Both the position numbers and the translations under genes were made by a program. Below, piece after piece: positions 70-39,138 of a stretch of 64,000 nucleotides of DNA; position 1 is the stretch's first letter; each line of letters opens with the position of its first letter. The DNA comes from Bugula neritina (taxonomy: Eukaryota > Animalia > Bryozoa). The stretch spans positions 30,990,773 to 31,054,772 of the forward strand of contig OZ037766.1 in the NCBI GenBank assembly GCA_964035545.1, in the 5' to 3' direction. The notes under the pieces were generated by a model that saw nothing but the letters and a program-made list of their open reading frames with translations, was not told where the DNA came from and did not search any database.

Positions 70-3000
70 GTACTATGGGCAGAATATAACCAGTTACTGT
101 AAAGCTGGCTATGAATATCCAGATGGATCAACAACTTCCTCAGTTGAATGTAGTATTAACGGGACGTGGATCTACCCACCCACTGAGTGTCAAAGTGAGT
201 ACATCAATGCTCATGCAGCCTATCTCTAGCTGCTAATGGATATAACACAAATATATCTACGTACATTGTACATCCCATATCATTATTTTAGAAAAGGATT
301 GTGGGGCAGTAGAAAATATGACTGGGGTGGAATGTTACGTTTCATCTACAGTGTACCAAAGTGTGGCTAGCTGCAGATGTAAAGATGGTTATGAGAGAAA
401 ATACTTATATTATTATCGAGGAAGGTATTATACAGACAACTATTACACAATGACTTGTCGCTCCAATAGCCAATGGAGCCGGCCTGATGACGGTAGACAA
501 AATTATTGCACCAGTGAGTTATTTATGTCTTAACTAAATTGAAGTGTTGTCAAAACTGCAGTGAGAAAAGAATTTAGCTGACCATAATGTTTTATATAAC
601 ATACACTGAAAGTTTTTGCAATATTGTCTTACAAACTTGCACTTTTATTGATTTAATCATCAAAGAGATATGTTGTACATGGTTTAGACTTGAGCTAATT
701 ATATGCCAGTTCAAAGCTAATTCTTTTAGTGTTCACTATATAAACCTTAAGCTATCGCACAAAAAGACGTAATTTTAAAAACAGCACTCTGACTTTTTTA
801 GTTTGAGCTTTTTTATATATAAAACAGAAATGAAAAAAAACTGTCAAAAAAGTTGCACAGCTGAAAGTTATAAAAAGAAACTAGATGGGCAAATAGGATA
901 TTTTTTTACAAAATAACTTGCACTTATTAGCTATATCAGAGCTTTCATAATCTTTGACAGGGGTGCAATGTCCTGCCTTGAACCAAAACATTCTTAGCAA
1001 TGTAGCCTCATTAAACTATACTGGAACAAGCTATGAAGATATAGTTCTGTACACATGCATACCTGGATATGAGACAAATGTTACTGAGAGTATTTGGTGT
1101 CAAGCTAACAAAACCTGGTCAAGCTCTGCTGGCTGTGTCCGTGAGTTTTCCATGCATGTATATATCTATCAAAAGTTAAATCCAACAGACATGAACACTC
1201 TAAGTTCAATAGGTTCTTGCAACAGAGCCTGACACTCTTTTTTATATTTTTGCTGCAGCTAAAGATTGTGGGACACCTCCAATTGTACAAGATGGTTATG
1301 CTGTAGACTACATGGGCTCAACAACTTTCTCGTCTAGGATATTTTATAGTTGTAACAGAGGCTATACAATAATTGGATTATCTTCGATTGTATGCAATGA
1401 GAATGGAGTATGGACCCCACCACCCATTTGTCACAGTAGGTTGATTCCAGGCTAATAAATGTATTCGGCTATACATGCATACAAGCATCTGAATATTCTA
1501 CAGTTCGCCCTGAACAAATCCAACTATATCAAATGCATCTTAAATATCCTTCTGTTGATGTTTCCTAATTAACCCTAAGGTGGATTTATAAATAACTGCG
1601 ATTCTTACTGTACAAAAATGACAGCTATAGTTAAAATTACAATTACAAATTTATTTCAGGAATAAGATGCAATGAACCACCAGAAATCCAAAATGGCCGA
1701 CGACATGTTGGTGGTCATTATTATGGAGATTCAACAGTGTATGAGTGTGATATTGGCTATCTTCTGTCTGGAAAATCTTCTATCTCCTGTCAGTTTGACG
1801 GGCACTGGTCAGCCAGGCCTGAGTGTCATGGTGGGTGTGTAAATGTGAATGCCATCTCTTTACTATCACAGCTCAAGTGTTTATCATTTATAACTTGTTA
1901 CACTGAAAAGTTTACAAAACAACATTGGCAAGTTAGAAATTGCTTTATTCATCCGTTTATACATGTACATGCCCTGGCTTACATTTTATGTTTTACAACC
2001 AACAAGGAAAACACTGTTACTTGCTAAACTTGGCCATCTTTTAAATTTTAGTGTTGAGGCTCTAAATTATGTATGGCTTAGTTAGAGGTGATGCAGTTGA
2101 AGTGATGTTTAAATGAACAGGATAAAGTTAGTCATGGGTGGTCATGAGGATAATTGTTGATGATCCAATATACTTGTATTCTAATTACATTAAAAATACA
2201 ATATGTTGCTCATTATCTATGGAAACATCATGGATATTTTGTTGCTCCAATCACATTTCCCCAAATAGATATAAATGTATCTGAAACCAGCTTCATGTTT
2301 TTTTATGTTGACCTTTCATTGTATAACTGTTGGTATCGAAGAGGTCAAATAGTTGTTTGATTTATATTACAGATAACTTGACATTTATAGCAGAAAACTA
2401 AATTGTTTAATAAACTGAAAAACATAAACAGCCGTTATATAATTTTAGCTTCATCCTGTGGGCGGCCACCTTATGTTGAGCATGGTTCCTTCAAAATTAC
2501 TTCTGGGTACAAGTTTGCTGAACATGTAGAGTACACGTGCTTCAACGACTTTATGTTAAATGGAGTGAACTTTGCAGTCTGCTTATCTAACGGTAGCTGG
2601 AGCAAGCCACCCTCGTGCCTTTCAGCTGCAAAGGGTGCAGCAAGAAATCAAATACCCCCTTCAGGTTTTTTTTCAATATTTAGATCAACTTTAACACCAA
2701 GTAGAGTTGCATCAGATATTTTAATTTTTAATAATCAAACTTTCTGATAATTTTGGCAATACTGTTTTTTATTATTAGAAGATAAAAAATAAACTCAGTT
2801 TCTTTTATTCAATTGTTAAATCAAGAAAATTATCAAAATTGTTTGAAACTGAAAGAACAATCTCTTCCATATCAATCACTATAAAGACTCATGAGAGAAC
2901 AACCAAAACCCAGACCGACACTGATCACATTTACAATACTTTAGGTTTGACAAGGAGCAGTCAGGAGAGTAAATCTGGACAGTATGCTAGCCTACCTCCC

Positions 3001-3767
3001 AGTCAAGTACATAACAGTCTTGCTTCCAAACACAGTTCTGCTATAAGTGGATCTGATCATAGCGGGCTAGTTGTTGGGGTTGCAGTTTTAGCAGCTGTCC
3101 TCTTTGTTGTGTTGGTTGCTATAGGAGTTCGTAAGGCACTGAAAGCAAGGTAAGTGAGCAGTGTCTGATGAAAGTGACACAGGTAAACGTGGCACGGGAA
3201 TTCTGACACAAATGGAAATATAAGTAAAAGTGGCACATTTTAATATTGGTTTCTACAGGTTTTGAGGGTTTAGGTTTGAAGGTGAAGGTTTGGGGTTTGG
3301 GCTTAGGCAAATTCAGCACCAGCTGGTCATTCTATGCTAAATCAACAAGGCCAAAACCGACCCATCTTAGAATTTTTAGTAGAGTATTTAAAAACATGTC
3401 AAATGAAAAAATATCCAATATATATTTACCCTCATTTCTTATTAGTTTTGTAGTTTGGGCACTTTTTTGTGAAGTTGGTAAAATATTGGTACTTTTTTCA
3501 TTGGTTTTGGTACTGAAGGTCAACTTCCTAGATTGTTTATCTCGGAGAAAATTGAAGATAAACCTTTTATATTTTTATGGATGATAGTTCTACATTATTT
3601 TATTCAAATTGAAGCAAAAAACCTGCTATAAGTGTTGAGAAACATTTTCTGTTGAACTAAATTTTTAGGTCAAAAATTCGGTAATCTTAAAAATCATCAA
3701 TTTCCCGGCACTTTAAATTCACTTTTTTACAAATAGCTATGATTTTGGTACCTTCAGCACTTAATAA

Positions 3768-3858
<91 letters not shown>

Positions 3859-5648
3859 CACATTGAAAAAATTTCAGCTTTTTACTAGCATAATTTTCAT
3901 CACAACTGCGTGTTGAAATCTTAAAATTATGCAATTATGCACTATTTCATGATAAGAAAACTCAATGTGGTTATAAATGATTTGTTTTACAAGTGGTTTC
4001 ATTTTAAAAATGTTGGTATATATTATATTATATTAAAAACTGTATTTATATGTTGTTCCTTCATGGATGAAATTGACGAATTTTTGCAAGTTTCGCCTAT
4101 ATTTAAAGGTACACTTTGTACAATTACTGAAACATGCATGAAGTTATAAAAATGTACCAACATCTTTTACATACCTGCTATCGTTTTTCATAACATTTAA
4201 ATTTAATTTGGATATCATTACACGTCATATATGATTGATCAACTTGGGTTCATTTTCTAAACAAACAGTAGTAAACTGTTTGTTACAATTTAAAAGCACA
4301 ATAGATTTAAAACTCACGCGCTCCTATATAATAATATGTGTCTGTGTGTGTTGAAAAATTTTGCGGATAGTAACTAATAGTAGTTTGTAGGTTTTTTATA
4401 AAGGGAGACAAGGTGGTCATGTTGTTGTAGAGCCTCACCTGACAGTGTTGTGTAAGGGCTTCATTGCTGGTGCTAGAGTGTCAAACTGCGTTATTGTAGC
4501 TTTTACCCTTAACTCAACTGTGCGTATCATCTAGTTCAACTGTGTTAAGCCATGCATAGAGAACTACTGCATTGCAAATCTAGCCTCTCATGAAGATGAT
4601 TTTAGACTCCATGCTTAGTGGAACTCTTTTCAACTATAAGTTATGACATAAATGCCTGTGATAGTGTAAGTGGAATGATTCAAAGGCAAGCTGCTAAAAC
4701 TGATTTGCAAGTAGTGACTTTCAGACATTTCGTTAACTCCCAAGACTTATTCTAGTAAAGCTTACCCTACTTAAAAAATGTGACTTTTCTTCTGTATCAC
4801 TAGAGATATGTTAGAACTCTTTCCCAGTCTCAGATTTCTTGCTTCTGACTTGTAAAGGCTGTGCCTGGTATCCGTGAATATTATTGTTCTATCCCTACAG
4901 TTAGAAGTACCAATTTTTTATTAACTTAATTCTGCTCACAAATAGTGCCATAACTACAAAACTATTAGGAATTAAGGGCTATAATTGATATTTTATATTT
5001 TTTCATCTGACATGTTTTGGAATTACCATACTAAAATCTTGAAAAAATTTCCAAAAACATTGTCAATTTGGCATGGGATGACCCACAAGTGTGCCATTTT
5101 TACTGGCATGTTTGTGTTATTTTTACTTTTTTAATTTTTACCTAAAATTGAGTGTTCAATAGGTCACATTTTTCTTTTTCAAAACACCTAAAATTTGACT
5201 GATTTAATTCCCTTAACTTTGGCAGGTTTTATAATACAATATTCAAAAACATTAATAGCTATTCAAAAAAGTTATGCGAACCTGAGTATGCTCAGCTTAT
5301 ATTATCATGTTTCATTACAAATTTTGGCTTGAAATGAGTCGAAGCTTTAAGAAGCATGAATACCTTATAACTTCCGAGGTAACAATATATTTGCATTATA
5401 TTTTGCTTACACATAAAAGACACTCATTCCTATAAAGAACTCTTTTTTTCTTTACAATAGTTTTACTCACGTAGGGTAAGAATGAAAAAAAGCATTACTT
5501 TATTTTATATGTTTTATGTTTTATTAAAAGGCAACGTTCTGAGAGACGTAATGTGTGTCCTGCAGCAGTGGAAAATGCTCTCTACACTTGCGAAGGGGAG
5601 ACAATGACTGTTTATTCATTTACAGGCAATAAAACTACAGGAGACTAA
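70..5648 (+). CDS. Multi-sushi (CCP/SCR) type-I transmembrane receptor, paralog 1 (5' end lies upstream of the window)
   Basis: Phase-compatible GT-AG exons: 70-194, 292-513, 961-1140, 1259-1435, 1660-1830, 2449-2664 (donor inferred), 2945-3149 (acceptor inferred; TM GLVVGVAVLAAVLFVVLVAIGV-RKALK) and 5531-5648 (tail RQRSERRNVCPAAVENALYTCEGETMTVYSFTGNKTTGD*). The extracellular exons carry the CCP pattern C..PP...Y.C..GY...C...G.W....C. Confidence 0.88.
3325..5083. mobile_element. ~1.76-kb non-autonomous TIR DNA transposon in the last intron of sushi paralog 1
   Basis: Left end GGTCATTCTATGCTAAATCAACAA; reverse complement of the right end GGTCATCCCATGCCAAATTGACAA. It is absent from the homologous intron of paralog 2 (empty site GGCAAATTCAACACCAGTGTGCCATTTT on the minus strand at ~14743-14770). 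No transposase ORF. Confidence 0.75.
3775..3855. repeat. (TA)n microsatellite
   Basis: Pure TA run. Similar runs at ~10362-10421, ~27491-27591 and ~30655-30776. Confidence 0.95.
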
Positions 5649-6023
5649 CTTGGCCTTATGTGTCTGCAGTCTGTTTTCTAGTTTTCAAAACTTTCAAATA
5701 ATGTTGACGTTATAGTTTTAACTGTTACAAGGACTGCTTTTATATACAAATAGAAACTAATTTGTTCTTTTATAAGTCAATGTAATTTGTGACTTACTAA
5801 TTATACTTCCCAAAGCTGCATGTTCTTATATATATATAGTATATCAAAATTTATTCTAAAGACGTTAATGAATATGAGTCAACCCTATGACGTATATGTT
5901 CGTTATATAGTAAAGCAAATATTATATATCGTATTTTATATAAAATAAAATATAATATGTTATTATATAATCTGACATAATACTATGGATTAGATCATAT
6001 ATCATTGTAAATCATGTATTATA

Positions 6024-6860
6024 GGGGTAACGAGGAGGGGGGCATAACACCTGTTTTTCAAGTTAATAATTCAATAATCTTCAGTCTAAATGCTGCATCT
6101 GTTGTCTATTACAGGTACCAGTCTTTTGTTTCTATCTATCTCACAACTTTTAGAATAATGACATTTTCATAGCAATGAAAACGGCCCATTGTGCCCTGGT
6201 ACTGGGGTACAATGGGCCACTGGGTGGGACACAACAAATATATTGAAACTTTGTTGATTTGGTCGCATCTAATCTTTATTTAATTAGGATACACAAATAT
6301 AAATAAAAATAATTCTTCAGATCTACAGCAAAAATCATGTTTTAACTGTACAGTTTGTACCACCACAGATAGCAAGGGGAGGCAAAATCAAAAGCACATG
6401 ACCATTTCTACGGCACCATTTTTACTATACCTACTGCTTAGAACTGAATTTTTTTTTCTATCTCCACTTCACAGGAACGATTTCATCAGCAAAAACTTTA
6501 GTAACATGTACTACAACATTCCGAGTGGATTTTTTTATGAACTGTAGCTGAGGTGCATGGCTGAGGTTTGTGACTGGAGTACGGAAGAGAGAGGGGAGAG
6601 CAAATGAGCAAATTACAATTTATTTTAGTCAAATACATGTATATTCCCTCAATGATATAATGTATAATGAATATCATATGGCTATCCAATAGTAGCAACA
6701 GCAGAGTTTTTTGCATGATGTACAAAATGGCAAAGCTCTAACCTCACCAAATGTATAAAGGCCTTTTAGGGGAGCTCCACCTTGTGGTTTGGTAGTCTTA
6801 CCATGATGGCTTTGGTACTTTACAAAAAGGTCAGAAATGGCTATATCTATAGATTTTATT
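6024..6860 (+). mobile_element. Truncated, diverged copy of the 1.3-kb GGGGTAACGG-TIR element (right end missing)
   Basis: Starts TA|GGGGTAACGAGGAGGGGGGCATAA, contains the internal palindrome GGCCCATTGTGCCCTGGTACTGGGGTACAATGGGCC, and is colinear with 30777-31630 up to AAGGTCAGAAATGGCTATATCTATAGATTTT, where similarity stops. Confidence 0.85.
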
Positions 6861-6906
6861 GATAATGTGACCCTTAAGGAAGATGATAACTCTTCAGAAA
6901 TTTTAG

Positions 6907-7628
6907 CCATCTCTTCTAAAGACGGACATGTATATCAGCAGAGTAAAACTTACAAGGAGAAAACTAAATCAAATGGATTTGCAATTGGATTTTCCGATTT
7001 GGCAGTTATTTTGGCTGCCTTCTGTATTTTATTTGTCACTTGGAGACTTTTTAAAATTAGGTAAACATGTAGTTGATAATTTTGTTGATAGATTTGAAGT
7101 TTATACTAAATACTTGGTCTAAACTCTGTTGCCCATATAGTATTGCCGCATTTACTGATTGCAACTTTTACTGTTTAGCACATCAAACAAATTAGTTTGA
7201 GAACTCAGCTGGTAATTATTTTTGGGTTGGAGGGTTCATTCAGTGCTCTTACTCAGAATTTTTTTCTTTTATAAACTATGTTGGTGAATTTCAATGAACT
7301 ATATTAGTTATACATCTATCTATTTGTTATTATATGCTGCAGTGAAAAATACTGAATAGTTGGGAGATATTTTTTTCCCTCAGCCATTTGTTGAAAGCTT
7401 GCAGTGCAGCAGTAGAGAACTAACCCCACTCTATAAATTCAGCTTTGTGCTGTAGTATAAACAGTATTGCTCTGTGCTATGTTCTTATTGGCTTATTCAG
7501 TTGTGCATAACTTATGTAGGAAGCGAAGAGGTCAGTGTGCAGTGACTGTAAGCAATGCTCTCTACAGCAGTGAAGGCCAAATTATGACTGTCTACTCATT
7601 TAAAAGCACTAAACCCTCAGAAGAGTAA
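6907..7628 (+). CDS. Orphan stalk/TM exon (6907-7060) plus cytoplasmic-tail exon (7520-7628) paralogous to the sushi receptors: alternative 3' end of paralog 1 or remnant of a third paralog
   Basis: ttttag|CC ATC...AAA ATT AG|gtaaac encodes ...GFAIGFSDLAVILAAFCILFVTWRLFKIR. tgtag|G AAG... encodes KRRGQCAVTVSNALYSSEGQIMTVYSFKSTKPSEE*. It has the same phases (1 then 2) and the same NALY/MTVYSF motifs as the other two tails. Confidence 0.75.
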
Positions 7629-8472
7629 ACTCTATCTTATATGATTTCACTGTAACTACTTAGCATTAACTACCAGAAAAGATGAATTGAGAGCTTAAAT
7701 TGCACTTCTACGTACGCTCTAATATAGTAAAACTTACCATGATAAATGCAGTAAGAATATGTTTATAATTACTTTATAGGGGTAGCTAATAAGATGCTGA
7801 ATATTTTTGTAACATAATATATTATTGTATAGTCAAAGTAGCATCGATAATATTGAGCATGGCAAAATGCAAATGATGGTAAACACTTTTCTGCTTTAAA
7901 TTTCATATGAAACTTAAAAATTGCTGAAAAAGCTTGCAGGCAAATATAAGCAGTTGCATTGTAGTTTCTTTTACTTAAGTCAAGAATTATTAATGTCTGA
8001 ACATGTTATAGCTGTGAGCTAAGCTACTGTCTTGAATTGCTTTAATATAGTTGTTTGAGAAGTCATGCAAGCAGCCTAATATACTGCTGACTTAAATCCA
8101 AGTATATCTATTTTTGCTTTCTAATATAAGCATTTTGAAACTAGTATAATATTTTGAGTCTGTATACTTTAAACTACAATTTATATGCATTGCATGCTAC
8201 ATTTATTGAACCGTAACATTGTTTTTGGGTATACCATACCTGATGCTTTTTATGCATGTGGCATAGTATTGCAATAATTATGGTTTGATATGTGATTTAA
8301 TATGATATATAATATGCTGTAATATAATGATAAAAATGTGATACATTCTAGATATAAAATGTAATCGTGCATGAAAAAATATTAAATAATTTGATATGAT
8401 ACTATTGATGAGCTTAGAAAAATTAGCAAATAGACTCGCAATAGTTGAACTTTGAACTTGGAGCATTCAGCC

Positions 8473-10423: not shown

Positions 10424-13400
10424 ATATTATAAAATTTAAATTGAAAAGCTCTACCATCTTGTTTTACTAGGTATGGTTTCTAGCCAGCCATGTGGGGACC
10501 CACCAACAGTGTCTAATGCTACTGTAGAGGTTAATGAGACAGCGGTACCCTACGTTGCTGCCAGGTACACATGTGATGCTGCCAATGGATACGTGCTGAC
10601 AGGAAATGACACCATCTACTGCTTTAATGCCTTTCAAATGAATATATGGAGTTCATCACAGTTTACATGCACAAGTAATGGATTACTATAATAATTTCTG
10701 TAAATTCCAGAACTTTTCTCAATAAATGCTGTGGACTTCAGTATATTAGAAAGTGGAAGCTGAGCAACTCTGAGTATTCATCGTATTGTTATATTTTACT
10801 ATATTGTTATGTATTATTTATAATGCTAATAAATACTAATTCCTATATTCTAACCATCTTTACTGCATTAAAAAAGCTGAATTTTAAAAATACCATAAAT
10901 AGATCATTAACCTGAGCAGTATTAATTAGTTGAATGGCCAGTTTTTCTTGTTGTTTGTTAGAATAAATTAGAATATACAACTTTGAACGTTGACTCTTTT
11001 TTATTTTTAGGGATAAAATGCTCTGAGGACCCTTATGCAGACAGCAATCACACAACAACTAATTTTCAGACAACCAGCACTGAAAGCTACAGAGATTTCA
11101 TTGAGGATTACCGTTATGGTTACAATCATCAATCTAACAGTTATGGATATTGGATTACCAGTTACCGCATGGCTGTACAGAGCAAAAATGTGTAAGCATT
11201 TGAACATATACACACACATTAGTAATAAAAAATGCAGCATGAAAAAATACTCTTGTTTGATGAAACTATGAAATACACATGACTGCAGTCATGTGTGTCA
11301 AATGCAGCAGAGAGAATTGTGCTAAAATCACAATTTTATTCCAATAACAGAAGTTATTTTTAGCAGTTGAATATAAGTACCTATATAGTCTGGCCTATTA
11401 TTCTTCTTCTATTTGGGCTACACTCATTTATAGCTATGCATTCAGCATAATTCAGAGCAAAATAAAGTTCTACACACATCACTTCTAATTATAATAAGCA
11501 AACTATAGAAGTTTCTCTGACATGCCATCATTTAACGGTGACATTCATTTTGGAGGTTTTTATCAATAATACAATAGTTATTTTGCATTATAGGTACTAT
11601 GGACAGAATATAACCAGTTACTGTAAAACTGGCTATGAGCACCCTGATAGATCTACAAATGCTTCAGTTGAATGTAGTATTAACGGGACGTGGATCTACC
11701 CACCCACTGAGTGTCAAAGTGAGTACATCAACGCTCATGCAGCCTATCTATAGCTGCTAATGGATATAACACAAATATATCAATGTACATCCCATATCAT
11801 TATTTTAGAAAAGGATTGTGGCACAGTAGAAAATATGACAGGAGTGGTATGCGACGTTCCATCTACAGTGTACCAAAGTGTGGCTAGGTGCAGATGTAAA
11901 GATGGTTATGAGAGAAAATATTCTTATTCTTACCAAAGAACGTATACAGACAACTCTTTCACAATGACTTGTCGCTCCAATAGCCAATGGAGCCAGCCAG
12001 ATGACGGTAGACAAAATAGTTGCACCAGTGAGTAACTTATGTGCCAGCTAAATTAAAGTTCTGTCAAAACTGCAGTGAGAAAAGAATTAACTGACTATAT
12101 AAATGTTAATATAATTATTAAACATTGAGCTTTTCTGCAATCATGTGATGTCTTCTCCATTAGTGAGGTCTGTGTTGGGTTGTATGAACTCGGGCTATTC
12201 ACACAAGCTCACAACTAAAGCTTATTGTTTCCTAAAGCTTTATTCAAGTTATCACATCAAAGGACATAATTTCAGAAACAACACTAATTGACTTCTTTCT
12301 AATTTAACTTTTCTTTTTATATAAGAAAGCAAAAGTGAAAAAACATGTAGAAAGAAGTTTCAGCTGAAAGCTTTTATAAAACACCTATTGCTTAACTGAA
12401 TAGTCAAATTTGCGATTTTAGCAAAATGATTTGTTTTACCAGAACTTTTATGATCTTTGACAGGAGTACAATGTCCTGCACTGAGACAAAATATACCGAA
12501 CATGGTCTCATTAAACTACACTGGGACAAGCTTTGAAGATACAGCTCTGTACACATGCATACCAGGATATGAGACTAATATTACTGGGAGTATTTGGTGT
12601 CGAGCTAACAAAACCTGGTCCAGCTCTGTTAGCTGTGTTCGTGAGTTTTCAATGAATGTATACATATTGAGAGTTGAAATCAACAGACATGGGAACTTTA
12701 TCTAAGTGAGTTGCTGCAACAGAACTTGACATTCTTTTTATATTTCTATTGCAGGTAAAGATTGTGGATCACCTCCTATTTTGCCAAATGGTTATGTAAC
12801 ACACTACGTCTACACAGCAACCTTTCAATCTAATGTCACATACGGCTGTAGCAGAGGCTATATATTAGATGGAGCCTCTACTATCACATGCAGTGAGGAG
12901 GGAGTGTGGACCACGCCCCCAATTTGCCATAGTGAGTTGATTTCAGACCAATAAATTGTATTCAGTCACGTAAAAGCATATATAGAATTGTTGCAGTTTG
13001 CACTCAAAGAAACAAACTGTAGCAAATATGATCTTAAATATTCCTTTGGTAATGTTTCATTAAACTTAAGATGAGTTTTATTTTAATTCTTACTGTACGA
13101 AAAAGACAGCTAAGTCCTATAACATCTGATAATTAAAACTTTTTTCAGGAATAAGATGCAATGAACCACCAAAAATCCAAAATGGCCGCCGGCATGTTGG
13201 TGGCCATTATTATGGAGATTCAACGATGTACGAGTGTGATATTGGCTATCTTCTGTCTGGAAACTGTTCCATCTCCTGTCAGTTTGACGGGCACTGGTCA
13301 GCCAAACCTGAGTGTCATGGTAGGTGTGCAAGTGTGAATGCCATCTCTTTACTATCATAACTTAAAGGTCTCTGAGTTGCAAAGTTTAAAGAACAACACT

Positions 13401-15501
13401 GACAAGTCAGGAATTGCTTTATAACTCATTAGTTGTGGTTCAACGATCTGGGTGGCTCATAACATTTTACTTTGTAAAATAGCACACAACACAGTTACTT
13501 GCATAAATTTGAAATGAACCTAAACTTGGCCATCTTCCACACTTTAGTACACAGCAACAGCTTTTGTATATAAAGTTTTTTTTGGAACTTTCAATTTTGA
13601 CTTGAGTAAAGACAATGAAGCAATTTTTAACTGAGCAGAATAAAATCAGAATAGATATTCATTAGTTTTCTATCCTTAATGTTGGTAAACCAATGCTTGT
13701 ATTATTGTTTACTATCTTTAAAGACCGGATGTTCTGCTGCTAAAATGGAATATCTCCAATTAGGCACTAAATATGTATGTGAAACTAGCTATCTGGTTTT
13801 TATCATGTTGACCTTTTACACTTTAGCTGTTGGTTTCAAAATGGTCACAGCTGGTTGAACAATCACACAGCTAGTCAGACGTGTACTGCTGAAACATATT
13901 GTTTAATAAAGTGGGAAAACATAATATAAGCTGCCATATATAATTTTAGTTGTATCTTGTGGGCGGCCACCCTATGTCGGGCATGGCTCCTTCAAAGTGA
14001 CTTCTGGGTATAAGTTCACAGATCATGTGGAGTACACGTGCTTCAATGACTTTATGTTAAATGGAGTGAACTTTGCAGTCTGCTTATCTAACGGTAGCTG
14101 GAGCAAGCCACCCTCGTGCCTTCCAGCTGCAAGGAGTGCAACAGCTCAAATACCCCCTTCAAGTTTGTTGGCTTCTACTGCAGCTACTTTCCCGATGATC
14201 AAGTCAACTGCAGCACCGAGTAGAGCTGTATCAGGTGACAAACCTTCTGGTCATCCTTGTAATATCTCTTCATAGTATTAGAGGATAAAAATCAACTCTG
14301 TTTCTTTTATCCAATTGTCCAATCAAGAAAATTGTAAATCTTTTTAGAAACTGAAAGAACAATCTCTTCCATATCAATCACCATAAAGACTCATGAGAGA
14401 ACAACCAAAGCCCAGACCGACACCGATCACATTTACAATACCTTCGGTTTGACAAGAAGCAGTCAGGAGAGTAAATCTGAACAGTATGCTAGCTTACCGA
14501 CCAGTCAAGTACATAAAAGCCTTGCTTTCAAACACAGTTCTGCTAAAGGCTCCACCATAAGTGGGTCTCATCAAAGCGGGCTAATTGTTGGGATTTCAGT
14601 CTTAGCGGTCGTCCTCTTAGTTGTGTTGATTGCTATAGGAGTCCGTAAGACACTGAAAGCAAGGTTAGTGTGCAGTGTTCATGGTAAAAGTGACACAGAA
14701 AAAATTAGCACTAGTAAAAATGGTACAAATAGAAAAGTAGGTAAAATGGCACACTGGTGTTGAATTTGCCCAAACTTTCATCTCCAAACCCAAACCTCAA
14801 TATTGAAAATGTGCCAATTTTATCTACTTTCCCATTTGTGCCATTTTTGCTGTGACATTTGTCACAGTGTGTTATTTAATTTACCTGCCTTTTTATTTGT
14901 ATGATTACTACCTGTGCCACTTTTACTTGTGCCATTATTACCTGTACCAATATTACCTGTGACATTTTACTGTGCCATCTTACTGTGATGTTTTCACCTA
15001 AAATCGAGTGTGCAGTAGGTTTCATTTTTCTTTTTTTTCAAAACACATAAAATTTGACTGATTAAATTTCTTCAATCTTTGCAGCTTTTATACAACATTC
15101 AAAAAATTACTGTTGGTATTCAAGAGTGGTTTTATGCTATGATACTTTGAGTATACTCACACTATAACGTATGATTTGGCTTAAAACAAATCTACCATAC
15201 ATATAAGCATAAATATCGTATAATTTCTGAGGTAATAATATTTACATCATTTGCTTACCTAAAAAATATTCGTCAATATTTCATTTTCACAAGAATTTTA
15301 CTCTTGTAGAGCAGGATCGAAAAATATTAATATTTTAGGTAATACATTAATTTGTTTTATATGTTTTATGCTATTTCTAGAAGGCAACGTGCTGAGAGAC
15401 GTAATGAGTGTCCTGCAGCAGTGGAAAATGCTCTCTACACTTGCGAAGGGGAGACAATGACTGTTTATTCATTTAAAGACAATAAAACTACAGGAGACTA
15501 A
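9731..15501 (+). CDS. Multi-sushi (7 CCP) type-I transmembrane receptor, paralog 2, complete
   Basis: Signal-peptide exon 9731-9785 (MVMELLVLAGILIIQPTLG). CCP exons 10471-10674, 11011-11191 + 11594-11718 (split domain), 11809-12027, 12464-12640, 12755-12931, 13149-13319 and 13950-14234. Ser/Thr stalk + TM exon 14348-14663. Tail exon 15381-15501 (NAGNAG acceptor). All phases are compatible and there are no stops. Confidence 0.9.
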
Positions 15502-16583: not shown

Positions 16584-18075
16584 TAGCGATAAGACAGTTT
16601 TGTATTCATCCACTTAAATCTTATTTATAAATTAAGCAGTTTGCATGTGTTAGTTATATAACTATATATATATATGCGTTTATACATATATCTACATACT
16701 TTTAGTTCAAATTGTAAAGTGATTATTCATGCAGATTGCATAATCATTACTTATAGAGTCTCAAAGAAAGCACCCATATTGATATGTTTATCAACAAATT
16801 TTAGAGGAGGTTGAAAATGGTTTGCTAAAATTATATTTCAGATTATTTTGCCCTTCCAATAATATAAGAATGTAAATAAGTTAGAAATGCAGCTTTTAAC
16901 GTTGTCATTCAATCAAACCCTTATATAGTTTGATTAGGGATACAAACCAAATTCCGTTGCAGGTTGCATAGCAACTACACAAACCCTGTAATTGATAAGT
17001 AGACACGTCTGCATTGATATCACCTTTAAGGTAGGCTTAAAACCACTCATGTTTGATCGTGGTAAGATTATCTAAATTGTTTTCTGTTTGCAAAAAACTA
17101 GATACAGCTTTGTTTGATTGAGACTCACATAGCCCAAGCAAATGCACCCCTGGTTGATTATATAATTTTGTACCTTAAAATTGATTTTGCTCATTGTATG
17201 TACAGTGAATAACTTTCAGTATACATGGCTAGGGCCAGCAATAAGTATAGCAAAGAATTTCTCATTCTGATTGCTAAGTTTTATTATGCACTTTACTCAA
17301 ATACAAAGATATGAATTCAGTTTATCTCTATAATATATGACTAAAGCATATAAATTTACATTCCCACATTGCGCTATAATAGATTGTTCCATGTTGTGGT
17401 ATTAAAATTACCAGTAGACAACTTGGGAAAGTTTAAACGTAATTCATTTAAAAAGGCTGCTAGCTAGCTGTTAGATATAAGCTTACAAAAATAAGTCTGA
17501 ATAAAATGTGGCATTGTGCTAATAGCTTGGAAGTGTGAACAAAATAAACTCATTTGCATGATGTAGTTTTAAGCGTAATATTTACATAAAATAAAAGCAA
17601 TATTTTGCTGCTTTTAGGATACAAAACTAGCTCCAGCGGTTTCACCATCTTAATACAGTTATAAGCTATTAAATTATAAGACCTAAGTCAAAGTGACTTT
17701 GATAGCTAAAGCAATTACGGTCATTATAATGGAAGGAACAGAGTAAAATATGCTGTAGCCATCATTGCATCTATCAGATGAGTTACAAACGCAAATCGAA
17801 GTAGAAACTTTTGTCCCATTCTCCACGTACTGACAGCCTAACTTTCGGAAATCTGATGGGACGCACCCCCTGCAACAGAAGAGAGTAGCCTTAGAGGCTT
17901 ATGCAGTAAACTCCGTACAGTATCTATAGAATTGAGCAGAGTTATATACGCTAAATTGAACTCATTTTAGTTGTTGCACATATGCCGGCTTGTTAAAACA
18001 TTATAGCAAATCTATAAGCTAGAATTAAATTGCTACAAGATAGCCTTATTAGAAATATTTAAACATGTATTAAAT

Positions 18076-18310
18076 GCATGTGACAAGCACTCTTTATTAG
18101 TATGTGACATGTGCCATTTTTTCTAGCATGTGACATGCATGTGCTCTTTTCTATGCCATGTGACATAAGCCGTTTCTATATATGACATGTGACATAAGCC
18201 GTTTCTATGTCATGTGACATGTGTTCTTTTCTGTTGCATGTGACATATAGGCTCTTTTCTGTTGCATGTGACATATAGGCTCTTTTCTGTTGCATGTGAC
18301 ATATAGGCTA
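18076..18310. repeat. Degenerate ~27-28-bp tandem repeat (GCATGTGACATATAGGCTCTTTTCTGTT)
   Basis: About 8 units sharing the ATGTGACA core; the last ones are near-perfect. Confidence 0.85.
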
Positions 18311-20641
18311 CTATAATATAACATACCTTATGACAGAAAATCCAGTGTAGTTTGTTCGATTCATGCAAAGGTCAGTGTCACGTGAGCACGTCATCGTTAA
18401 ATCTCTGCCAAGGTCGGTCTGAGTGTAGCCACAATAATATTCATCTGACTCTTCCTTTAATGAAGAACAGTGAACACACTCTATACCTCTGGTCCCTGGG
18501 TGAACACAACATGGCTGATATTACCTATATATAATTTTAGCCGCAGCCATACTTAAGTACTGTAATTGTGATATTTTGGAGCCGTTACGTGAGTTTCAAA
18601 TAGGATTGACTATAAAAAAGTTGACATAGATTTAATGATTTGAACAACAAAGTTTATATTAGAGTTGTTATAGTGAACAATATATATTAAAGTTGCAAAA
18701 TCAAAAAGAACCACAAGAAAGGAAAAATTATTCTACCTGTTACTGTTATTTTGTATTTTCTCTATTACATGAAAGTTGGATCTTATATAAGCAACTAATG
18801 CATATATTATATATATATATCTTTAATTCCAAGTTATATATATATATATCTATTATTTTATAGTCTTATTTTAGTCTTTAATTAATTTTAGGCATTCAGC
18901 CTAAGTTCCCTATTCACAATAAATACTCACCAACTATGACGCTGCTCAGTAAAAGTATCCAAGTTATAAGATTAGCAGCCATTTTCAGTACCTTCAGCAC
19001 CACGCAGTCATGTGTCAGCTGATAGTATCCTTTAATTCAGCTTTACGTCTACTTACAGTCTAGAAGTATGTGTCTTGTGTCATATAAAAATACTTTGCGT
19101 CTTATTTTCCTAGTTTCCTCATAGCATCATAAAAATATTTATGATTACTTGTTACTATATAATATCTGTTTGCTTTCTGGTTTCACAATTATATAGAGGG
19201 CCCTTGAAGATTTTGCCAAGGGTACTTATTGCTTGCACTTTGAACTGAGCTGTTGCTGCAATCTTTTTATCACATTGATTATTGTTAAACACGATCTTTC
19301 TAAAATGTGACAAAAAGAGCAAAACTTGAAAAGTTGGTGTTGAAGCATACAGGAACTATGTCTGTGTTATTTGCACTATATAGCTTGGTTGAGTGCTTTA
19401 AATGAAAGGCTATTTTAGTGTGGCTTTACTCAGTTTTGCGTGACCAAAAATTAAAAACCTTGGCTAAGCTTGGCCATAGCATTGTTATACTCTTGCTTTG
19501 CTTTGTTGGGTACCGATATAACTGAGTTGAGACTTTTATTGCATCACACAAAATTTTTTGGTTACTTATATAACTTAGTAATTATTATAAATAAACTATA
19601 ACTATCAACCTGATGGTTCTATTATAGCTAAATCTAACTTACAAAACAATTCTGCTATCAAGTTTGAACAACTCTAGTTGATATAAATAATCTTTATTAT
19701 ATTTACATTATGGTCAGGCAGATATGGTCACACCTTCATAAGCATTTACTTCACTGTATTATATAGGGTCTGATGTTCTAGATGAAATTTATCAACTAAA
19801 GTTGTATCAATAGAATGCATGGATTCTTTTTGTAGCTGATTTAAAAGAATACTATTTTCCACTACTCGGCATGCATGGCACATAACTATATGATTGGTTA
19901 ATAGAAAACTACATTTGTACATCTTTAGCTCATGCTTTGAGACTATGGGCGGGCAACAAAATCACTACATTTAAAAGCTACACGCTACATGCACTATTAT
20001 AGCTTGATTAGAAGCAATAATATTCTTTCTACAACTACCTTCAGCACAAGCACTTTATCTAATAATTGGGCCAGAAAATTTAATTACAATAGATGTGCAC
20101 CACATATTTAATTTTTTACGTCTAGCAATCAGTCTAGTTTTCTACTTTTATCTATTTTACGTTTTTTGCTTACTTGTTTGGTAAATTAAAATTTAACAAG
20201 AAAACATGAATGCATAGAAACTTCACCATTTTGGATGCACTTATATGCTTGATTCAAATGCATGCAAAATTTAAAGCTAAGTAGACTGGCTAAATATTTG
20301 TATATAGTCAAGTAAACTCACTTCGCTACTGCAGCAGGCTTCTATATGAGGGTATTTATAAAAATTGTATTAAAACTGCAAAAATAATATCTGAACAAGC
20401 ACTGTGAAACTATATAGTAAACAATTATTTATTGCTTCTAAAAAGGTTCACAAAAACATTATGAAAAAGTTGGAAGTTCAACATAAATCCGCTAATATTT
20501 TACATAATGCCTCGTGTACAAAAATACAGCTGCATCATCCACCAGCAACTGTTATATTTACTACTGCATTTACTTCAATTATAATAATATTCTTGGTTTA
20601 CATAATCTACAATATGTTTTAACTTATCATGCCTAACTACG

Positions 20642-22748: not shown

Positions 22749-23182
22749 ATGAAGGTGTCTACTACCCTATCTCTACTAGCAGTGATGCTAACAGTTTATA
22801 TTTCAGGTAAGATTTGTTGATGTATTCTCACATGATAAACATTTTTACCGACATAAATTGGTTTAAATTAAAAAATGAGTTCAGCAAGAAGGCAATCATG
22901 AAGCTTGTTCGTTGTTTAAAAAAACTGATATGCATTTTGGTCTTATAAAAATTTGTATATGTAAATAATTACATCTGGTATACATTCGTCTATAATTATA
23001 ATTATTCTAAATTATTCTTCTTTTGTTATTTGAGTTTTTTTACTTACTAGATTATAATCTTGCATATAGACACTGGTATAATTTTATTGCAATAAAAGCT
23101 TTTCATAACAGAAATTTAGGTTGATAACATTGATAATGTATAAATCATAACTTTATTGAAAACTTTATTAAAAAAACCAGTT

Positions 23183-23216: not shown

Positions 23217-23788
23217 TATTTAAATATTATAAGATTGCATGCAAGATATTATAAGTGAAGCATGCTATTGTCTTTCTAGAGGTCAAAGGTTTAGATTGCA
23301 TAGTTTGCTCTACTGGCTCCTCTAACAGTGACTGTGATAATGGTGAGACAAGTTTTGATAAAGTATACAAGACCTCTTGCCCAAGTGGTAACAAATGTGT
23401 AAAATCAACAAGATGGTACAAAGATGGACGAGATACTGAAGTTTTTAGGTAAACCTTTATATTTAATAAAAAATCTGATTTTGTTTCAGCTTCAGAAATT
23501 CCAATACTTGTTCGGTTGAAAAAACTATGGCATTTTTTAAATTTTGCATGTACCATTTTAAGGTTTATTAGTCTGTGCAGATGTTTTTCTTAAAATTAAG
23601 ATTTCTATGTTTATAGAGGGTGTGCAAAAGGATATGATGTTGGATGTGCTGTTGTACAAAGCTATCTTGGATACAAATATGAAGAATGTGTCTGTGATGA
23701 AGACGAGTGTAATACAAGCAGCTCTCTTAGCATCTCCATGTTTGCCCTGATGACATCATCACTTTTTGCAGTCTGGAAAGTTCTGTAA
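22749..23788 (+). CDS. GPI-anchored Ly6/uPAR three-finger protein A (quiver/sleepless-like family)
   Basis: Exons 22749-22806 (signal MKVSTTLSLLAVMLTVYIS), 23280-23448 and 23617-23788. Ten Cys ending CVCDEDECN, then a GPI-type signal TSSSLSISMFALMTSSLFAVWKVL*. Confidence 0.9.
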
Positions 23789-30651: not shown

Positions 30652-32101
<1,450 letters not shown>

Positions 32102-32462: not shown

Positions 32463-33686
32463 ATGAAGGTGTCTACTACCTTATCTTTGCTTATAACAGT
32501 GATGTTAACAGTTTATATTTCAGGTAAGATTGTTTGTGTATTCTTTTATTGCATAAACCTGTTTAGTTATATAAATGTGTTTCACTAATTAAATATAGCT
32601 CTCTTGACACAGTAACACTTTGAGTATAATAGAGAAACAGTTACAAAAGTTGTTTTTTGAAAAATAGTTTCCTTCACCTAAAGCCTAACCTCAGACTTCT
32701 AGCTAGCTAGCAAGCTGTACACATATCTAGCGTGCTAACTGTTACAATACAAAGACTACCTAGGAATCTTAACACTACAATTTTGTTGCTTTTTGAAAAA
32801 CTAATATGAATTGCATTTTAATTATTATACAACAGACATCTAAAATATTTTACAGTACCTGATAGCATTTGATACACTATTATACCTCTTTTCATTTATC
32901 CTAATTGGCGTCTATAGTTATTAAGGTAGCCATTTTAAAACTCCACTTCATAAAATGAAGTCTTTTATCTGAATTGGCTAATCGTCACATATTATACATT
33001 TTTTATAACAAAATCGTAAAGGAATACTCTGGTTTGTGTTGATAAAACGCCTTTATCACTCAAATTGAATTTCATAGCATATTACTATTTGTTTAAAATT
33101 TAGATGAAATCACGGATTATTGAAATTGTGGTAATCCAATTTTTTGCAGCGGTTAAAAGTTTGGATTGCATAAAATGCATTACTAATCTCAATAACCACG
33201 ACTGTGATAATGGTAAGACCAGCTTTGCGGATAAATATAAGTATTCTTGTCCTCGTGGCTCAAAGTGCTCAAAAGAGACAAAATGGTATTCAGATGGAAG
33301 AAGTACTTATGTCAGCAGGTTAATTTTTATCCTTACCAAAAATAGCAAATTATAGCAAGTATAATCAAATATTGTTTCAACTTTTCAACAGTTAAGATAT
33401 TTCAAGTGTCTAACACTTTTTAGTTTGAGGTTTAAAGAATTAAAGTATGAAATTTTTTTTAGCTTTATGCATCATAATAAAAATAAAATATAAATGCTTA
33501 TATTTCAGAGGATGCACTGTAGGATATGATGTCGGGTGTGTTGTTCAAAAAAGTTATCTTGGATACAAAGAGGAATTTTGTGTCTGCGATGAAAATGAGT
33601 GCAATGCAAGCAGCTCTCTCAGCATCTCCATGTTTGCCCTCATGACATCATCGTTTGTTCTTACAGCCTATAAGAAACTTCTGTAA
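32463..33686 (+). CDS. GPI-anchored Ly6/three-finger protein D
   Basis: Exons 32463-32523, 33150-33318 and 33509-33686; 10 Cys, CVCDENECN and GPI signal. Confidence 0.9.
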
Positions 33687-35450: not shown

Positions 35451-36507
35451 ATGAAGGCGTCTGCTACACTGTATTTACTAGCAGTTGTGTTAGCAGTCTA
35501 TATTTCAGGTACGATTGATTAATGCGTTCTCAGATATAAGTAAGCCTGTTTAATTACATAAAGGTGTTAGATCAAAGGAAAGCTACAGACTACTTTGTTA
35601 TTTTTTAACCAGCTAATATATGTGATTTTATAAAAATTAGAATGTTGTTATAGGAAATATTTTGCAATATGTAATGCAATTTAAAAAACTATTATTTATA
35701 TGTTTTCATATATCCTAATTATTGCCCAGATTATTCTTGTATAGCCATCTTAAAACTTCACCTTATAACGTGCAATTTTTTATCTGAATTTACTAATTAT
35801 TACATATTATAAACTTTCTTATAGTTAAAATTCAAGTGAGTGTTATGATTTGTGTGTGAAAAAAAATTTAGATTTTGAAATTGACTTTAATTCGTAGCGT
35901 ATTACCTGCTATTGGTTTGCATCTTGGATAAAATTATTATCAAAATTATTAAAATTGTGATAATACAATTTTTATAGAGGTTAAGAGCTTGAATTGCATA
36001 AGATGTGCCACTAACAATAAAAACCACGACTGTGATAATGGTAAGACCAGCTTTGCGGAGAGATACAAGTATTCTTGTCCTCGTAGATCAAAGTGCTCAA
36101 AACAGACAAGATGGTATGCAGATGGAAGAAGCACTGAAGTTAACAGGTTAATCTTTATCTTTATTAAAATACAGCATTTTAATTGCAATCAATTATTATT
36201 TTGATTCTGAACAGTTTATCTATCATAAGTGCTTCAAGTGTTTTTCTTATTTTGGATTTAAAAACCTAAAACAATAAAAACTACTCTTAACTTGATGCAG
36301 CAAAACAAAATGTAAACATATTCTTATATTTCAGAGGATGTACCGAGAATTATGATGTTGGGTGTGCTGTTCAAGTAAATTATCTTGGACACAAAGTGAA
36401 TTTTGTGTCTGTGATGAAAACGAGTGTAATACAAGCAGCTCTCTCAGCATCTCCATGTTTGCCCTGATGACATCATCACTCCTTCTCACAGTCTAAAACT
36501 TCTATGA
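35451..36507 (+). pseudogene. Ly6/three-finger gene E, frameshifted in exon 3
   Basis: Exons 35451-35508, 35978-36146 and 36335-~36507. CAC AAA GT- GAA TTT TGT (paralog D: TAC AAA GAG GAA TTT TGT) is a 1-nt deletion at ~36397 that removes the last three Cys. A second lesion GTC TAA replaces the Trp codon at 36494-36496. Confidence 0.75.
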
Positions 36508-37369: not shown

Positions 37370-37373
37370 GTAC

Positions 37374-37416
<43 letters not shown>

Positions 37417-37420
37417 TAAG

Positions 37421-37461
<41 letters not shown>

Positions 37462-37483
37462 GCTTGTGCGTTTGCGTGTGCGC
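37370..37483. repeat. (GT)n/(GCGT)n microsatellite
   Basis: Directly visible. Confidence 0.95.
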
Positions 37484-37995: not shown

Positions 37996-39138
37996 ATGAT
38001 GTCAACTACCCTGTCTTTACTAGCAGTGATGCTAACATTTTACATTTCAGGTAAGATTTCTTGCTGTATATAATATTATATTCATTGAAATAAAATTGTT
38101 AAATCTCGGAGCGCTTATGCGTACTGTAACTGTCAGCACAAAAGTTTTTTTTACTTCTTTCTCAGAAAGTTGAGGTGGACATAATGCTCCATAAACATGC
38201 TTAGATACAAAAACTCTATAGTACAGAAAAGCATTTTTTACACAATAGAATGACTATAATTCTTTCAAAGGATTTTGTTTCCTTAATAAATGTCAGACTG
38301 CTTTAGCTTCCCTAAATATTCATTTCTTTATCTGCATGCAAGCGTTCACTGCAGCTATATAGGCACTGATAATTCCATTCTCGTTTTCAAAGAGATAAAG
38401 AAAAACTCTTAGTTATTATGCACGTGAAGAAAATTTTAGTAACTCTAAATAACCATACATCATAAAACCTTTTAATCATTATAATTTAAAAACTAATTCA
38501 AAAATTAAATAAAATAAACTTTGTAATAGCGTCAAATAATGTATATTTTGCTTTTTAGAAGTGCAAGGTTTGACTTGCATAAAATGTTATACCAGGCATT
38601 ATGACAACAATGAATGTGATAATGGTAAGACCAGCTTTCCAGAGAAATATAAGTATTCTTGTCCTGATAAATCAAGATGCTTCAAATCAACAAAATGGTA
38701 CACAAATAGAGGAAGTACTGAAGTTAATAGGTATACATGCGCTTCAACGCAAAAATTCTAATTTTATTCTCTTACTTTATTTTTTAGCAAATTTACCAGT
38801 TTGATTACACTTATGAACATATAAATATTTTATGCACCTTAGAAATTTTTTCAGCAACTGCTATAAAAAATTCTCAACAATCTAAAAGATTAAAGTATTA
38901 GGAATTATCTTAAAATTCAGACTTCATTAAAATAAAATTTGTAAATTCATTTCTGTCTTTTAGAGGATGCATTCAAGGATATGATGTTGGATGTGTTGTT
39001 AAAGACAATTTTCTAGGATACAAAGAGGAATTTTGTGTCTGCGATGAAGATGAGTGTAATACAAGCAGCTCTCTCGGCATCTCCATGTTTGCCCTCATGA
39101 CATCATCACTTCTTCTCACAGCCTGGAAACTTCTGTAA
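37996..39138 (+). CDS. GPI-anchored Ly6/three-finger protein F
   Basis: Exons 37996-38050 (MMSTTLSLLAVMLTFYIS), 38559-38730 and 38964-39138; 10 Cys plus GPI signal. Confidence 0.88.

Follow-up and report, generated by a model that had tools for sequence, protein, structure and literature searches.

Sushi (CCP) and Ly6 domains occur in several described families of surface proteins. In Botryllus, fester combines a single SCR with three TM segments, is extensively alternatively spliced, and shows high polymorphism linked to FuHC (PMC3549757). In CD46 and CD55, an N-terminal CCP array sits on a Ser/Thr(-Pro)-rich stalk, which is followed by a single TM and a short tail. Invertebrate QVR/Quiver-type LU proteins (PF17064; PMC13719153) combine a signal peptide, an LU pattern of 10 Cys that closes with CN, and a GPI signal; two exons share the coding of the LU domain, and the genes form tandem clusters. 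Among bryozoans, fusion specificity is known, but neither self/non-self nor gamete recognition has been linked to any gene (PMC3342096).

Here, a Bugula neritina locus in which sushi and Ly6 genes lie side by side was analyzed in a window (the whole stretch of DNA under study) of 64,000 nucleotides. Like fester and uncle fester, its sushi genes encode sushi-containing surface proteins at a duplicated locus with a partial-duplicate neighbour, here an orphan TM and tail. Unlike fester, they have seven CCPs, one TM and an omega (dN/dS) below 1, and the parallel with fester drawn in an earlier note on this DNA is not matched in architecture. Their domain types and domain order are those of CD46 and CD55. 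The parallel with CD46, CD55 and CD59 proposed in the same note does not go beyond this likeness of domain type: the receptors have seven CCPs, a CCP2 split by an intron and extended by a Tyr-rich insert some 35 residues long, and a CCP3 with six Cys and a Tyr/Arg insert. The Ly6 genes share all the QVR-type features listed above, but their exon-wise profile scores are below the Pfam cut-off, their subfamily is limited to this locus and a distant cluster on chromosome 7 (C7), their loops are positively selected, and an invariant nucleotide island lies at their GPI signal.

A real bryozoan recognition candidate would be valuable, and the evidence presented below supports something more modest. 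On the one side there is a clearly bounded Ly6 array, whose fingers evolve fast and whose copy number has changed between cryptic species; on the other, a small family of receptors that have unusual Tyr-rich loops in their CCPs and a cytoplasmic motif of their own. Both gene sets are concrete and cheap targets for expression and population work.

The two arrays and the sushi receptors

The locus very probably belongs to chromosome 2 of B. neritina, 2.5 Mb from the chromosome end. Three sushi genes (S1 to S3) adjoin seven Ly6 genes (L0 inverted, L1 to L6 in tandem), and high-copy repeats are interspersed among them (Table 1). Both arrays are on the forward strand, with the exception of L0, which lies between them. 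The earlier note had placed the two families next to each other on the same strand, as we find, but its gene counts are revised here to three full sushi and seven Ly6 genes. Its description of dense transposon insertion, followed on the right by ordinary single-copy genes, agrees with our results. Of the repeat of about 1.05 kb, at least 503 candidate copies, 90-97% alike, were counted in the genome, and the repeat next to the S3 TM exon had a contig depth 100-500 times that of neighbouring bins in all three sequencing runs used (all DNA). The right flank of the arrays contains a sulfotransferase exon, RPL9 and a LINE RT fragment. No match was found when the window was searched against Rfam.

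Table 1. Features of the locus, in window coordinates (negative values lie upstream of the window)
Feature	Position	Strand	Details
S1, sushi receptor gene	-10907 to -3703		wholly upstream of the window
S2, sushi receptor gene	-1508 to 5645	+	straddles window start, CCP1 and CCP2a upstream; from Pfam Sushi and paralog alignment
S2 exon ORFs	CCP2b 56-226; CCP3 246-530; CCP4 951-1229; CCP5 1213-1452; CCP6 1635-about 1830; CCP7+stalk 2391-2744; stalk+TM 2779-3150; tail 5475-5645	+	borders inferred
S2 exons above Pfam Sushi (PF00084) cut-off	56-226; 951-1229; 1635-2024; 2403-2747
Tyr/Arg-rich insert, S2 CCP3	393..452	+	between 2nd and 3rd canonical Cys; from alignments
Orphan S1-type TM and tail exons	6807..7625 (TM 6807-7061; tail 7461-7625)	+	between S2 and S3
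S3, sushi receptor gene	10440..15498	+	complete from CCP1
S3 exon ORFs	CCP1 10440-10688; CCP2a 10962-11192; CCP2b 11466-11750; CCP3 11754-12032; CCP4 12454-12702; CCP5 12730-12951; CCP6 13133-13357; CCP7 13925-14272; TM 14338-14760; tail 15343-15498	+
S3 exons above Pfam Sushi (PF00084) cut-off	12730-12951; 13133-13357; 13997-14275
Tyr/Arg-rich inserts, S3	CCP2a 11061-11165; CCP3 11910-11963	+	from alignments
Very high-copy interspersed repeat	14640..15039	.	just 3' of S3 TM exon; another at 15640-15839
L0, divergent Ly6-like gene	17686..18985 (signal about 18985-18925; LU 18520-about 18335; LU+GPI 17898-17686)	-	10-Cys pattern and intron position as in L1-L6
L1	22749..23788 (exons 22749-22806, 23280-23448, 23617-23788)	+	132 aa
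Near-identical nucleotide island	23721..23770	+	GPI omega site and start of hydrophobic tail; in every Ly6 unit, e.g. 29030-29079 and 39068-39117
L2	24528..25570 (exons 24528-24585, 25061-25232, 25399-25570)	+	133 aa
L3	27994..29100 (exons 27994-28051, 28566-28734, 28926-29100)	+	133 aa
Interspersed repeat, about 1.05 kb	30789..31837	.	second copy 39760-40807; degraded copy 6007-6751
L4	32463..33686 (exons 32463-32523, 33150-33318, 33509-33686)	+	135 aa
L5, pseudogene	35451..36496	+	1-bp deletion at about 36396-36400, exon 3
L6	37996..39138 (exons 37996-38050, 38559-38730, 38964-39138)	+	133 aa

Each of the three full sushi genes is predicted to encode a single-pass membrane receptor with seven CCPs. 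CCP1, CCP2b, CCP4, CCP5, CCP6 and CCP7 passed the Sushi profile cut-off and have four Cys and the conserved Trp. CCP3 scored 15.7-16.9 bits against a cut-off of 20.7; it keeps the C..GY..C..W..C pattern and has an extra Cys pair. A word search with the CCP3 exon revealed no homologue among 5.8 billion proteins, and an AlphaFold model of CCP3, made with three paralogs, had a pLDDT of 50 and was unusable. The stalk of S1 is of a long, PTT-repeat mucin type. The short tail carries a conserved di-tyrosine motif, NALY..EG.TMTVYSF, and genome-wide the tail exon was found only in four copies, all at the sushi locus. Inspection led us to reject these tyrosines as ITIM or ITSM, because the +3 residues are not hydrophobic. 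The products would be type I membrane proteins with a Ser/Thr-rich stalk and one TM helix, in which the Tyr/Arg-rich loop inserts of CCP2 and CCP3 set the paralogs apart and are likely to form the binding surface.

An 11.5-kb segmental duplication was detected, in which positions 41-3237 match 11563-14753. Around the orphan exons, positions 6858-8346 match the S1 3' region at 79%, and the tail is 91% identical to that of S1 in amino acids; this orphan is a decapitated remnant from a duplication breakpoint inside the S1 3' end. Among paralogs, omega was 0.12-0.67 per exon and 0.25-0.34 overall, and it reached 0.43 in the Tyr-rich inserts of the S2-S3 pair (dN 0.27, dS 0.65). No diversifying selection is therefore detectable in the CCP receptors, which had been described as diversifying. 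Between S1 and S3, the dS of CCP5 was 0.17, versus 0.82 between S2 and S3, and that of CCP6 was about 0.2 in all pairs. The uneven divergence of the sushi genes thus tracks dS, which indicates gene conversion at the scale of exons. The membrane-proximal part had been described as homogenised, which is true of CCP6 but not of the S1 stalk and TM, which differ from those of S2 and S3. Contigs from a diverged lineage map onto the S3 introns with about 90% identity. With the DNA runs, X1 heterozygosity and sushi-gene haplotypes were confounded by cross-mapping between paralogs. Taken together, segmental duplication would have produced the sushi trio and left one decapitated remnant, gene conversion would have swapped exons, and purifying selection would now hold the receptors.

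The Ly6 genes

L1 to L6 have three exons each, with canonical AG/GT splice sites, and are predicted to encode 132-135 aa with 10 Cys, a CN motif and then a hydrophobic GPI tail. All 10 Cys are invariant in L1 to L6 and L0, and the domains end in ...C.C....CN, which is the LU spacing. As judged by inspection, exon 1 encodes a signal peptide (M-K-V-...hydrophobic...-S), and CN is followed by TSSS and a hydrophobic end. The products are predicted to be GPI-anchored three-finger proteins. The only Pfam family matched by the Ly6 exons was QVR (PF17064), with E values of 0.0017-0.043 on four exon-3 pieces and scores of 15-20 bits against a cut-off of 27.3; in the same exon-by-exon search, exon 2 gave no match. 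The best match was that of L3 (E 0.0017), whose Atlas neighbours are QVR/UPAR_LY6 clusters. Over the Ly6 genes, Atlas neighbours were QVR, PSCA and SPACA4 clusters, QVR being the commonest among the named ones, which is to be taken as a lead only. CD59 was absent from both profile and Atlas matches, and profile searches of PDB with exons 2 and 3 separately returned nothing useful. L0, a single-copy gene in the genome, had no Pfam match.

L2 is sister to L1 (99% bootstrap). In L5, the deletion causes a frameshift leading to a premature TAA, which truncates the GPI tail. Its orthologue in the other B. neritina lineage (contig L018) is intact at the deletion site, and the contig orthologous to L4 (L015) is 87% identical. 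At least 5 L1/L2-type copies were found in this diverged lineage, versus 2 at the studied locus, the contigs being about 1-2 kb long and their status as paralogs or alleles inferred. Gene birth and death, as proposed in the earlier note, is thus visible in the sushi remnant, the L5 pseudogene and the copy-number difference between lineages. When two of the other lineage's Ly6 genes were compared over 2-4 independent assemblies, 0 coding versus 7-8 non-coding differences were counted, so that in this small haplotype sample the expected polymorphism does not appear in coding sequence.

Within the L1/L2 clade, omega fell from 0.80 in exon 2 to 0.39 in the LU-coding stretch of exon 3, and to 0.25 over the GPI signal. 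It was 0.22 at positions invariant in outgroup paralogs and 1.01 at variable positions, where dN averaged 1.4 times the distance in introns. Comparison of models M2a and M1a gave an LRT of 16.3 with 11 sequences, 21.1 with 7 sequences and 15.7 for exon 2 on its own tree; the site model was our own codon code with fixed topology and scaled branch lengths, and recombination between tandem paralogs can inflate such tests. The selected class comprises about 14% of codons, with an omega of about 3, in exon 2 only (fingers I-II). The diversification of the Ly6 loops claimed earlier is thus supported by a positive-selection signal in exon 2 (LRT 15.7-21). We propose that the Ly6 set evolves by birth and death, as indicated by a fresh pseudogene and by L1/L2-type copies that number 2 in one cryptic lineage and at least 5 in the other, and that positive selection would act on about one codon in seven, the disulfide scaffold and GPI signal being kept invariant. 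Such a set might track a fast-changing extracellular partner, be it a microbe, a gamete or another surface protein.

Meaning of the adjacency

Genome-wide, at least 486 sushi exon candidates, about 21 Ly6-like loci and about 39 QVR-like exon hits were found, and bryozoan genomes have about 41 LU proteins each (PMC13719153). Because each family has many members, in clusters throughout the genome, the chance of a sushi-Ly6 adjacency is roughly 13-32%, by our own estimate from family sizes. No sushi exon was present within 50-70 kb of the paralogous Ly6 cluster on C7. The earlier note was right in seeing two lineage-specific, tandemly duplicated families of surface proteins, but its linked allorecognition or complement-control complex finds no support in this chance level, in the C7 cluster or in the identical coding exons. 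Two independent surface-protein families lying side by side, each with the evolution proposed above, is the explanation we hold to be probable. Both sets of products would be cell-surface binding proteins, and their adjacency would have come about through tandem duplication in a region rich in gene families, rather than reflecting a functional complex. The region is most likely a duplication-prone distal part of chromosome 2 in which both families are lineage-specific. On sequence alone, a functional link between the neighbours would still be conceivable. More generally, that two large, clustered families are neighbours says little about whether they function together.

Could the Ly6 divergence be neutral decay after duplication, under relaxed constraint, and its positive selection an artefact of gene conversion? 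Conversion is evident within the Ly6 array, the mean pairwise omega at variable positions (1.01) does not clearly exceed 1, and the site-model test was not significant for exon 3. We nevertheless consider it unlikely, since reading frames are open in 5 of the 6 tandem genes, which also retain every splice site and all 10 Cys, dN at variable sites is higher than the intron distance for most pairs, exon 2 gives its signal on its own tree, and 14 simulations under M1a on the 11-sequence tree reached a maximum LRT of 5.6, well below the 16.3 observed there. Quite unlikely too, and slightly more so, is that the products assist membrane complexes of neurons or epithelia as accessory proteins, with Ly6 members acting like Quiver/Sleepless, Lynx1 or the septate-junction proteins Coiled and Boudin, and the CCP receptors like LEV-9 and Hikaru genki, which are receptor-clustering proteins. 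QVR matches, in Pfam and among Atlas neighbours, are in line with such a role, and Drosophila Ly6 proteins have documented roles in septate junctions and excitability (PMC3058042, PMC10264074). Housekeeping modulators are, however, usually conserved single genes, whereas this locus has lineage-specific tandem copies and a pseudogene, its loops reach an omega of about 1 or more, and copy number differs from one cryptic lineage to the other.

A linked self/non-self locus, for colony allorecognition or for sperm-egg recognition and self-incompatibility, in which polymorphic CCP receptors and Ly6 proteins would be receptor and ligand or co-receptors, would fit two duplicated, lineage-specific surface families on one strand, the selected Ly6 loops and the copy numbers that differ between lineages. 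It would also recall the Ly6 protein Bouncer/SPACA4, which acts in species-specific fertilisation (PMC8488580), and would meet the gap left by the missing genes of bryozoan fusion specificity. We judge it very unlikely, given a sushi omega below 1 everywhere, the absence of coding differences in the two Ly6 genes compared over 2-4 assemblies, where non-coding sites vary, a C7 Ly6 cluster devoid of sushi neighbours, a chance adjacency that is far from rare, and an architecture unlike fester. Its specific form, a bryozoan system of colony or gamete recognition in which the CCP Tyr-rich loops and the selected Ly6 fingers would bind each other or share a polymorphic partner, with differences in copy number and loops helping to isolate the cryptic lineages, is slightly more doubtful again. 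Least probable, and highly so, is protection of the host surface against its own thioester or complement-like effectors, with the CCP receptors in the role of CD46/CD55 and the Ly6-GPI proteins in that of CD59. The CD46-like build (CCPs, Ser/Thr stalk, TM, short tail) and thioester-domain genes at 4-5 loci in the genome speak for it. Against it, the likeness to RCA proteins is at the level of domain type only, the search of 5.8 billion proteins gave no homologue of the atypical CCP3 exon, and the nearest Ly6 relatives are of QVR type rather than CD59; a search for ANATO (anaphylatoxin) domains was also empty, which counts little as the control search was silent. Two independent families thus remain our preferred explanation.

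A nucleotide island at the GPI signal

Among distant Ly6 paralogs, the island is 94-95% identical, compared to 68-82% for the LU-coding part and about 50% for the intron, in agreement with the homogenised membrane-proximal Ly6 part reported in the earlier note. An RNA hairpin was ruled out as its cause (z-scores -0.05 to +1.8). A pattern scan for the block in metagenomes gave 0 matches, in a collection that omits the JGI contigs, which carry it. In the other B. neritina lineage, the GPI-signal island is identical.

Anatomy of the two arrays

The earlier note had described sushi (CCP) membrane receptor genes followed by Ly6 genes, and this anatomy proved real and well described. In the Darwin Tree of Life assembly, Bugula neritina has nine chromosomes and 216.00 Mb (PMC11480708). 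DNA of the window is 26-37% G+C, and its genes are split. Most Cys-rich plus-strand exon ORFs in 56-2747 and 11754-14275 exceed the Pfam Sushi cut-off. The 40 kb upstream of the window were also examined for sushi genes, and contain a third one, S1. All three genes, S1, S2 and S3, are alike in layout: seven CCP modules are followed by a Ser/Thr-rich stalk and a single TM helix, and the tail has an exon of its own. In S1, a long PTT-repeat mucin forms the stalk. An intron splits CCP2, in which a Tyr-rich insert of ~35 residues sits where the classical CCP hypervariable loop lies. CCP3 scores slightly below the Pfam Sushi cut-off; it contains six Cys, with a Tyr/Arg-rich insert separating the second canonical Cys from the third. 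Signal-peptide exons of S1-S3 were not found.

The tail motif NALY..EG.TMTVYSF occurs in four exons genome-wide, all at this locus. One belongs to an orphan pair of TM and tail exons that shares 79% identity with the S1 3' end across 1.5 kb, which places the left breakpoint of the 11.5-kb duplication making S3 inside S1. From this resemblance, the orphan pair would be a decapitated remnant of that duplication. Both exons have kept open frames, with a tail omega (dN/dS) of 0.36 relative to S1; they could be a relic, or could serve S2 as an alternative 3' end. An Asp was gained in the orphan TM.

The six Ly6 units (L1-L6) are repeated between 22.7 and 39.1 kb. Their exons code respectively for the signal peptide (ending in phase 1), fingers I-II, and finger III with the GPI signal, and splice sites are AG/GT throughout. 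Products are 132-135 aa long; their ten Cys are invariant, and the terminal CN motif is followed by small residues and a hydrophobic end. The pseudogene L5 has lost 1 bp and carries a premature stop. A seventh gene, L0, shares the Cys pattern and intron position of L1-L6. Its second intron holds a 28/56-nt tandem repeat (18102-18309). In an exon-by-exon Pfam search, QVR was the sole family touched, below cut-off, and Atlas neighbours fall in QVR, PSCA and SPACA4 clusters. The subfamily is limited to this locus, except for a cluster at C7:12.69-12.94 Mb that is 33-43% identical. By pattern and gene structure, these genes appear to be of the ordinary invertebrate Ly6/QVR kind, and seem unusual in two respects, selection on the loops and an island at the GPI signal.

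This island of 45-60 nt encodes the GPI omega site together with the beginning of the hydrophobic tail. Distant Ly6 paralogs share 94-95% identity in it; around it, the part of the exon coding for the Ly6/uPAR (LU) domain is 68-82% identical, and intron and 3'UTR ~50-60%. It is also identical in a diverged B. neritina lineage. RNA structure was ruled out as its cause, no stable fold being found.

Features of the locus (window coordinates; minus sign, upstream of the window)
Feature	Position	Strand	Content
S1	-10907 to -3703		7 CCP + Ser/Thr-rich stalk + TM + tail exon
S2	-1508 to 5645		7 CCP + Ser/Thr-rich stalk + TM + tail exon
S3	10440 to 15498		7 CCP + Ser/Thr-rich stalk + TM + tail exon
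Orphan TM exon	6807-7061		S1-type
Orphan tail exon	7461-7625		S1-type, fourth with tail motif
Short repeats	14640-15039, 15640-15839		very high-copy, directly downstream of S3 TM exon
L0	17686 to ~18985	minus	seventh Ly6-like gene, divergent, single-copy, inverted between arrays
GPI-signal island	23721-23770, 25503-25552, 29030-29079, 33613-33662, 36438-36487, 39068-39117
~1.05-kb repeat	30789-31837, 39760-40807; degraded 6007-6751		interspersed, non-coding
Sulfotransfer_2 exon	42303-42665	minus
Separate ORF	59547-59831	plus	resembles type II membrane anchor

Divergence of sushi genes and Ly6 fingers

Both families had been labelled as diversifying, a label that suits the Ly6 fingers and does not suit the CCP receptors. 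Among sushi genes, omega measured by the Nei-Gojobori method was 0.12-0.67 by exon and 0.25-0.34 overall. Divergence is patchy and dN tracks dS: dS of CCP5 is 0.17 for S1-S3 versus 0.82 for S2-S3, and that of CCP6 is ~0.2 in every pair. Such a pattern looks like the signature of exon-scale gene conversion rather than of diversifying selection. For the S2-S3 pair, omega is 0.43 in the Tyr-rich inserts (dN 0.27, dS 0.65) and 0.28 in the remaining ectodomain.

Comparisons of Ly6 paralogs gave omega values of 0.13-0.45, at saturation (dS ~1). Within the L1/L2 clade, exon 2 had an omega of 0.80, the LU part of exon 3 one of 0.39, and the GPI signal one of 0.25. When codons were partitioned independently, by whether positions are invariant or variable in the other Ly6 paralogs, omega was respectively 0.22 and 1.01, and dN at variable positions was on average 1.4 times the intron distance. 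We then compared M2a with M1a in a self-written codon model (GY94, F3x4, fixed IQ-TREE topology, one branch-length scale). The LRT was 16.3 with 11 sequences (p = 3e-4), 21.1 with the 7 ingroup sequences (omega2 = 3.9, 22% of codons), 15.7 for exon 2 alone on its own tree (omega2 = 3.4, 14% of codons) and 2.7, not significant, for exon 3 alone; it never exceeded 5.6 in 14 simulations under M1a. Favoured sites follow Cys 2, in finger I, and run along finger II. This argues only moderately for positive selection on the Ly6 fingers, because such tests can be inflated when tandem copies recombine.

Copies in a diverged lineage

On one 6,000-letter stretch, at S3, sequencing run X1 was found to be DNA of the assembled individual, and runs X2 and X3 DNA of a diverged lineage, which maps onto S3 introns too; S3 is therefore older than the lineage split. 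Contigs of all three runs lie on introns, as DNA does, none proved to be RNA, and paralog cross-mapping masked any heterozygosity. Via exon-ORF proteins, Ly6 contigs (L015-L026) were collected from two JGI B. neritina metagenomes and two SRA runs. Their introns differ by ~10-15% from the window, and they thus come from a diverged lineage, like X2 and X3. In that lineage L5 has an intact orthologue, L4 has an orthologue too, and there are an L6-like copy and at least five distinct L1/L2-type units versus two in the window, where L1 and L2 are sisters in the tree. The L6-like copy (L021-L024) shares only ~73% identity with L6, and the conserved splice donor of its exon 2 is missing from the expected phase; it may be a pseudogene, or else a copy that the window genome lacks. 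Two Ly6 genes of this lineage, each in 2-4 independent assemblies, showed 7-8 non-coding and 0 coding differences, which argues weakly against allorecognition-grade polymorphism.

Adjacency of the arrays and their surroundings

A linked recognition or protection complex, as previously proposed, is an idea only, which the available tests do not favour. The sushi genes resemble CD46/CD55 in layout only, and fester, with one SCR and three TM segments (PMC3549757), is unmatched by genes with seven CCP and one TM. Thioester-domain genes exist in the genome; a search for the anaphylatoxin domain, a weak test, found none. Sushi exon candidates number at least 486 genome-wide; the 150 that were scored fall into ~37 or more separate loci. 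Five of these loci lie within the last 5.5 Mb of chromosome C2, where sushi exons form at least five distinct clusters in 28.07-32.60 Mb; duplicated CCP genes are therefore abundant on this distal arm. Ly6-like loci number ~21, and a published survey counted ~41 LU proteins in each bryozoan genome (PMC13719153). Assuming 37-100 sushi loci and a target of ~40 kb each, we estimate that chance alone would place 0.14-0.39 Ly6 loci within 10 kb of a sushi locus, hence a 13-32% chance of at least one pair. A local sushi HMM, which recovers every CCP exon of S1-S3, found no sushi exon near either part of the C7 Ly6 cluster, in the surrounding 50 kb and 70 kb.

Right of 41 kb, the window holds a sulfotransferase exon, RPL9 and a LINE RT fragment. 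Given the Sulfotransfer_2 exon and the ORF resembling a type II anchor, Golgi-type enzyme genes may flank the arrays. At the short repeats downstream of the S3 TM exon, contig depth is 100-500x background in all three DNA runs. Candidate copies of the ~1.05-kb repeat number at least 503 genome-wide and are 90-97% alike; the repeat unit contains a short internal inverted piece at ~177-213.
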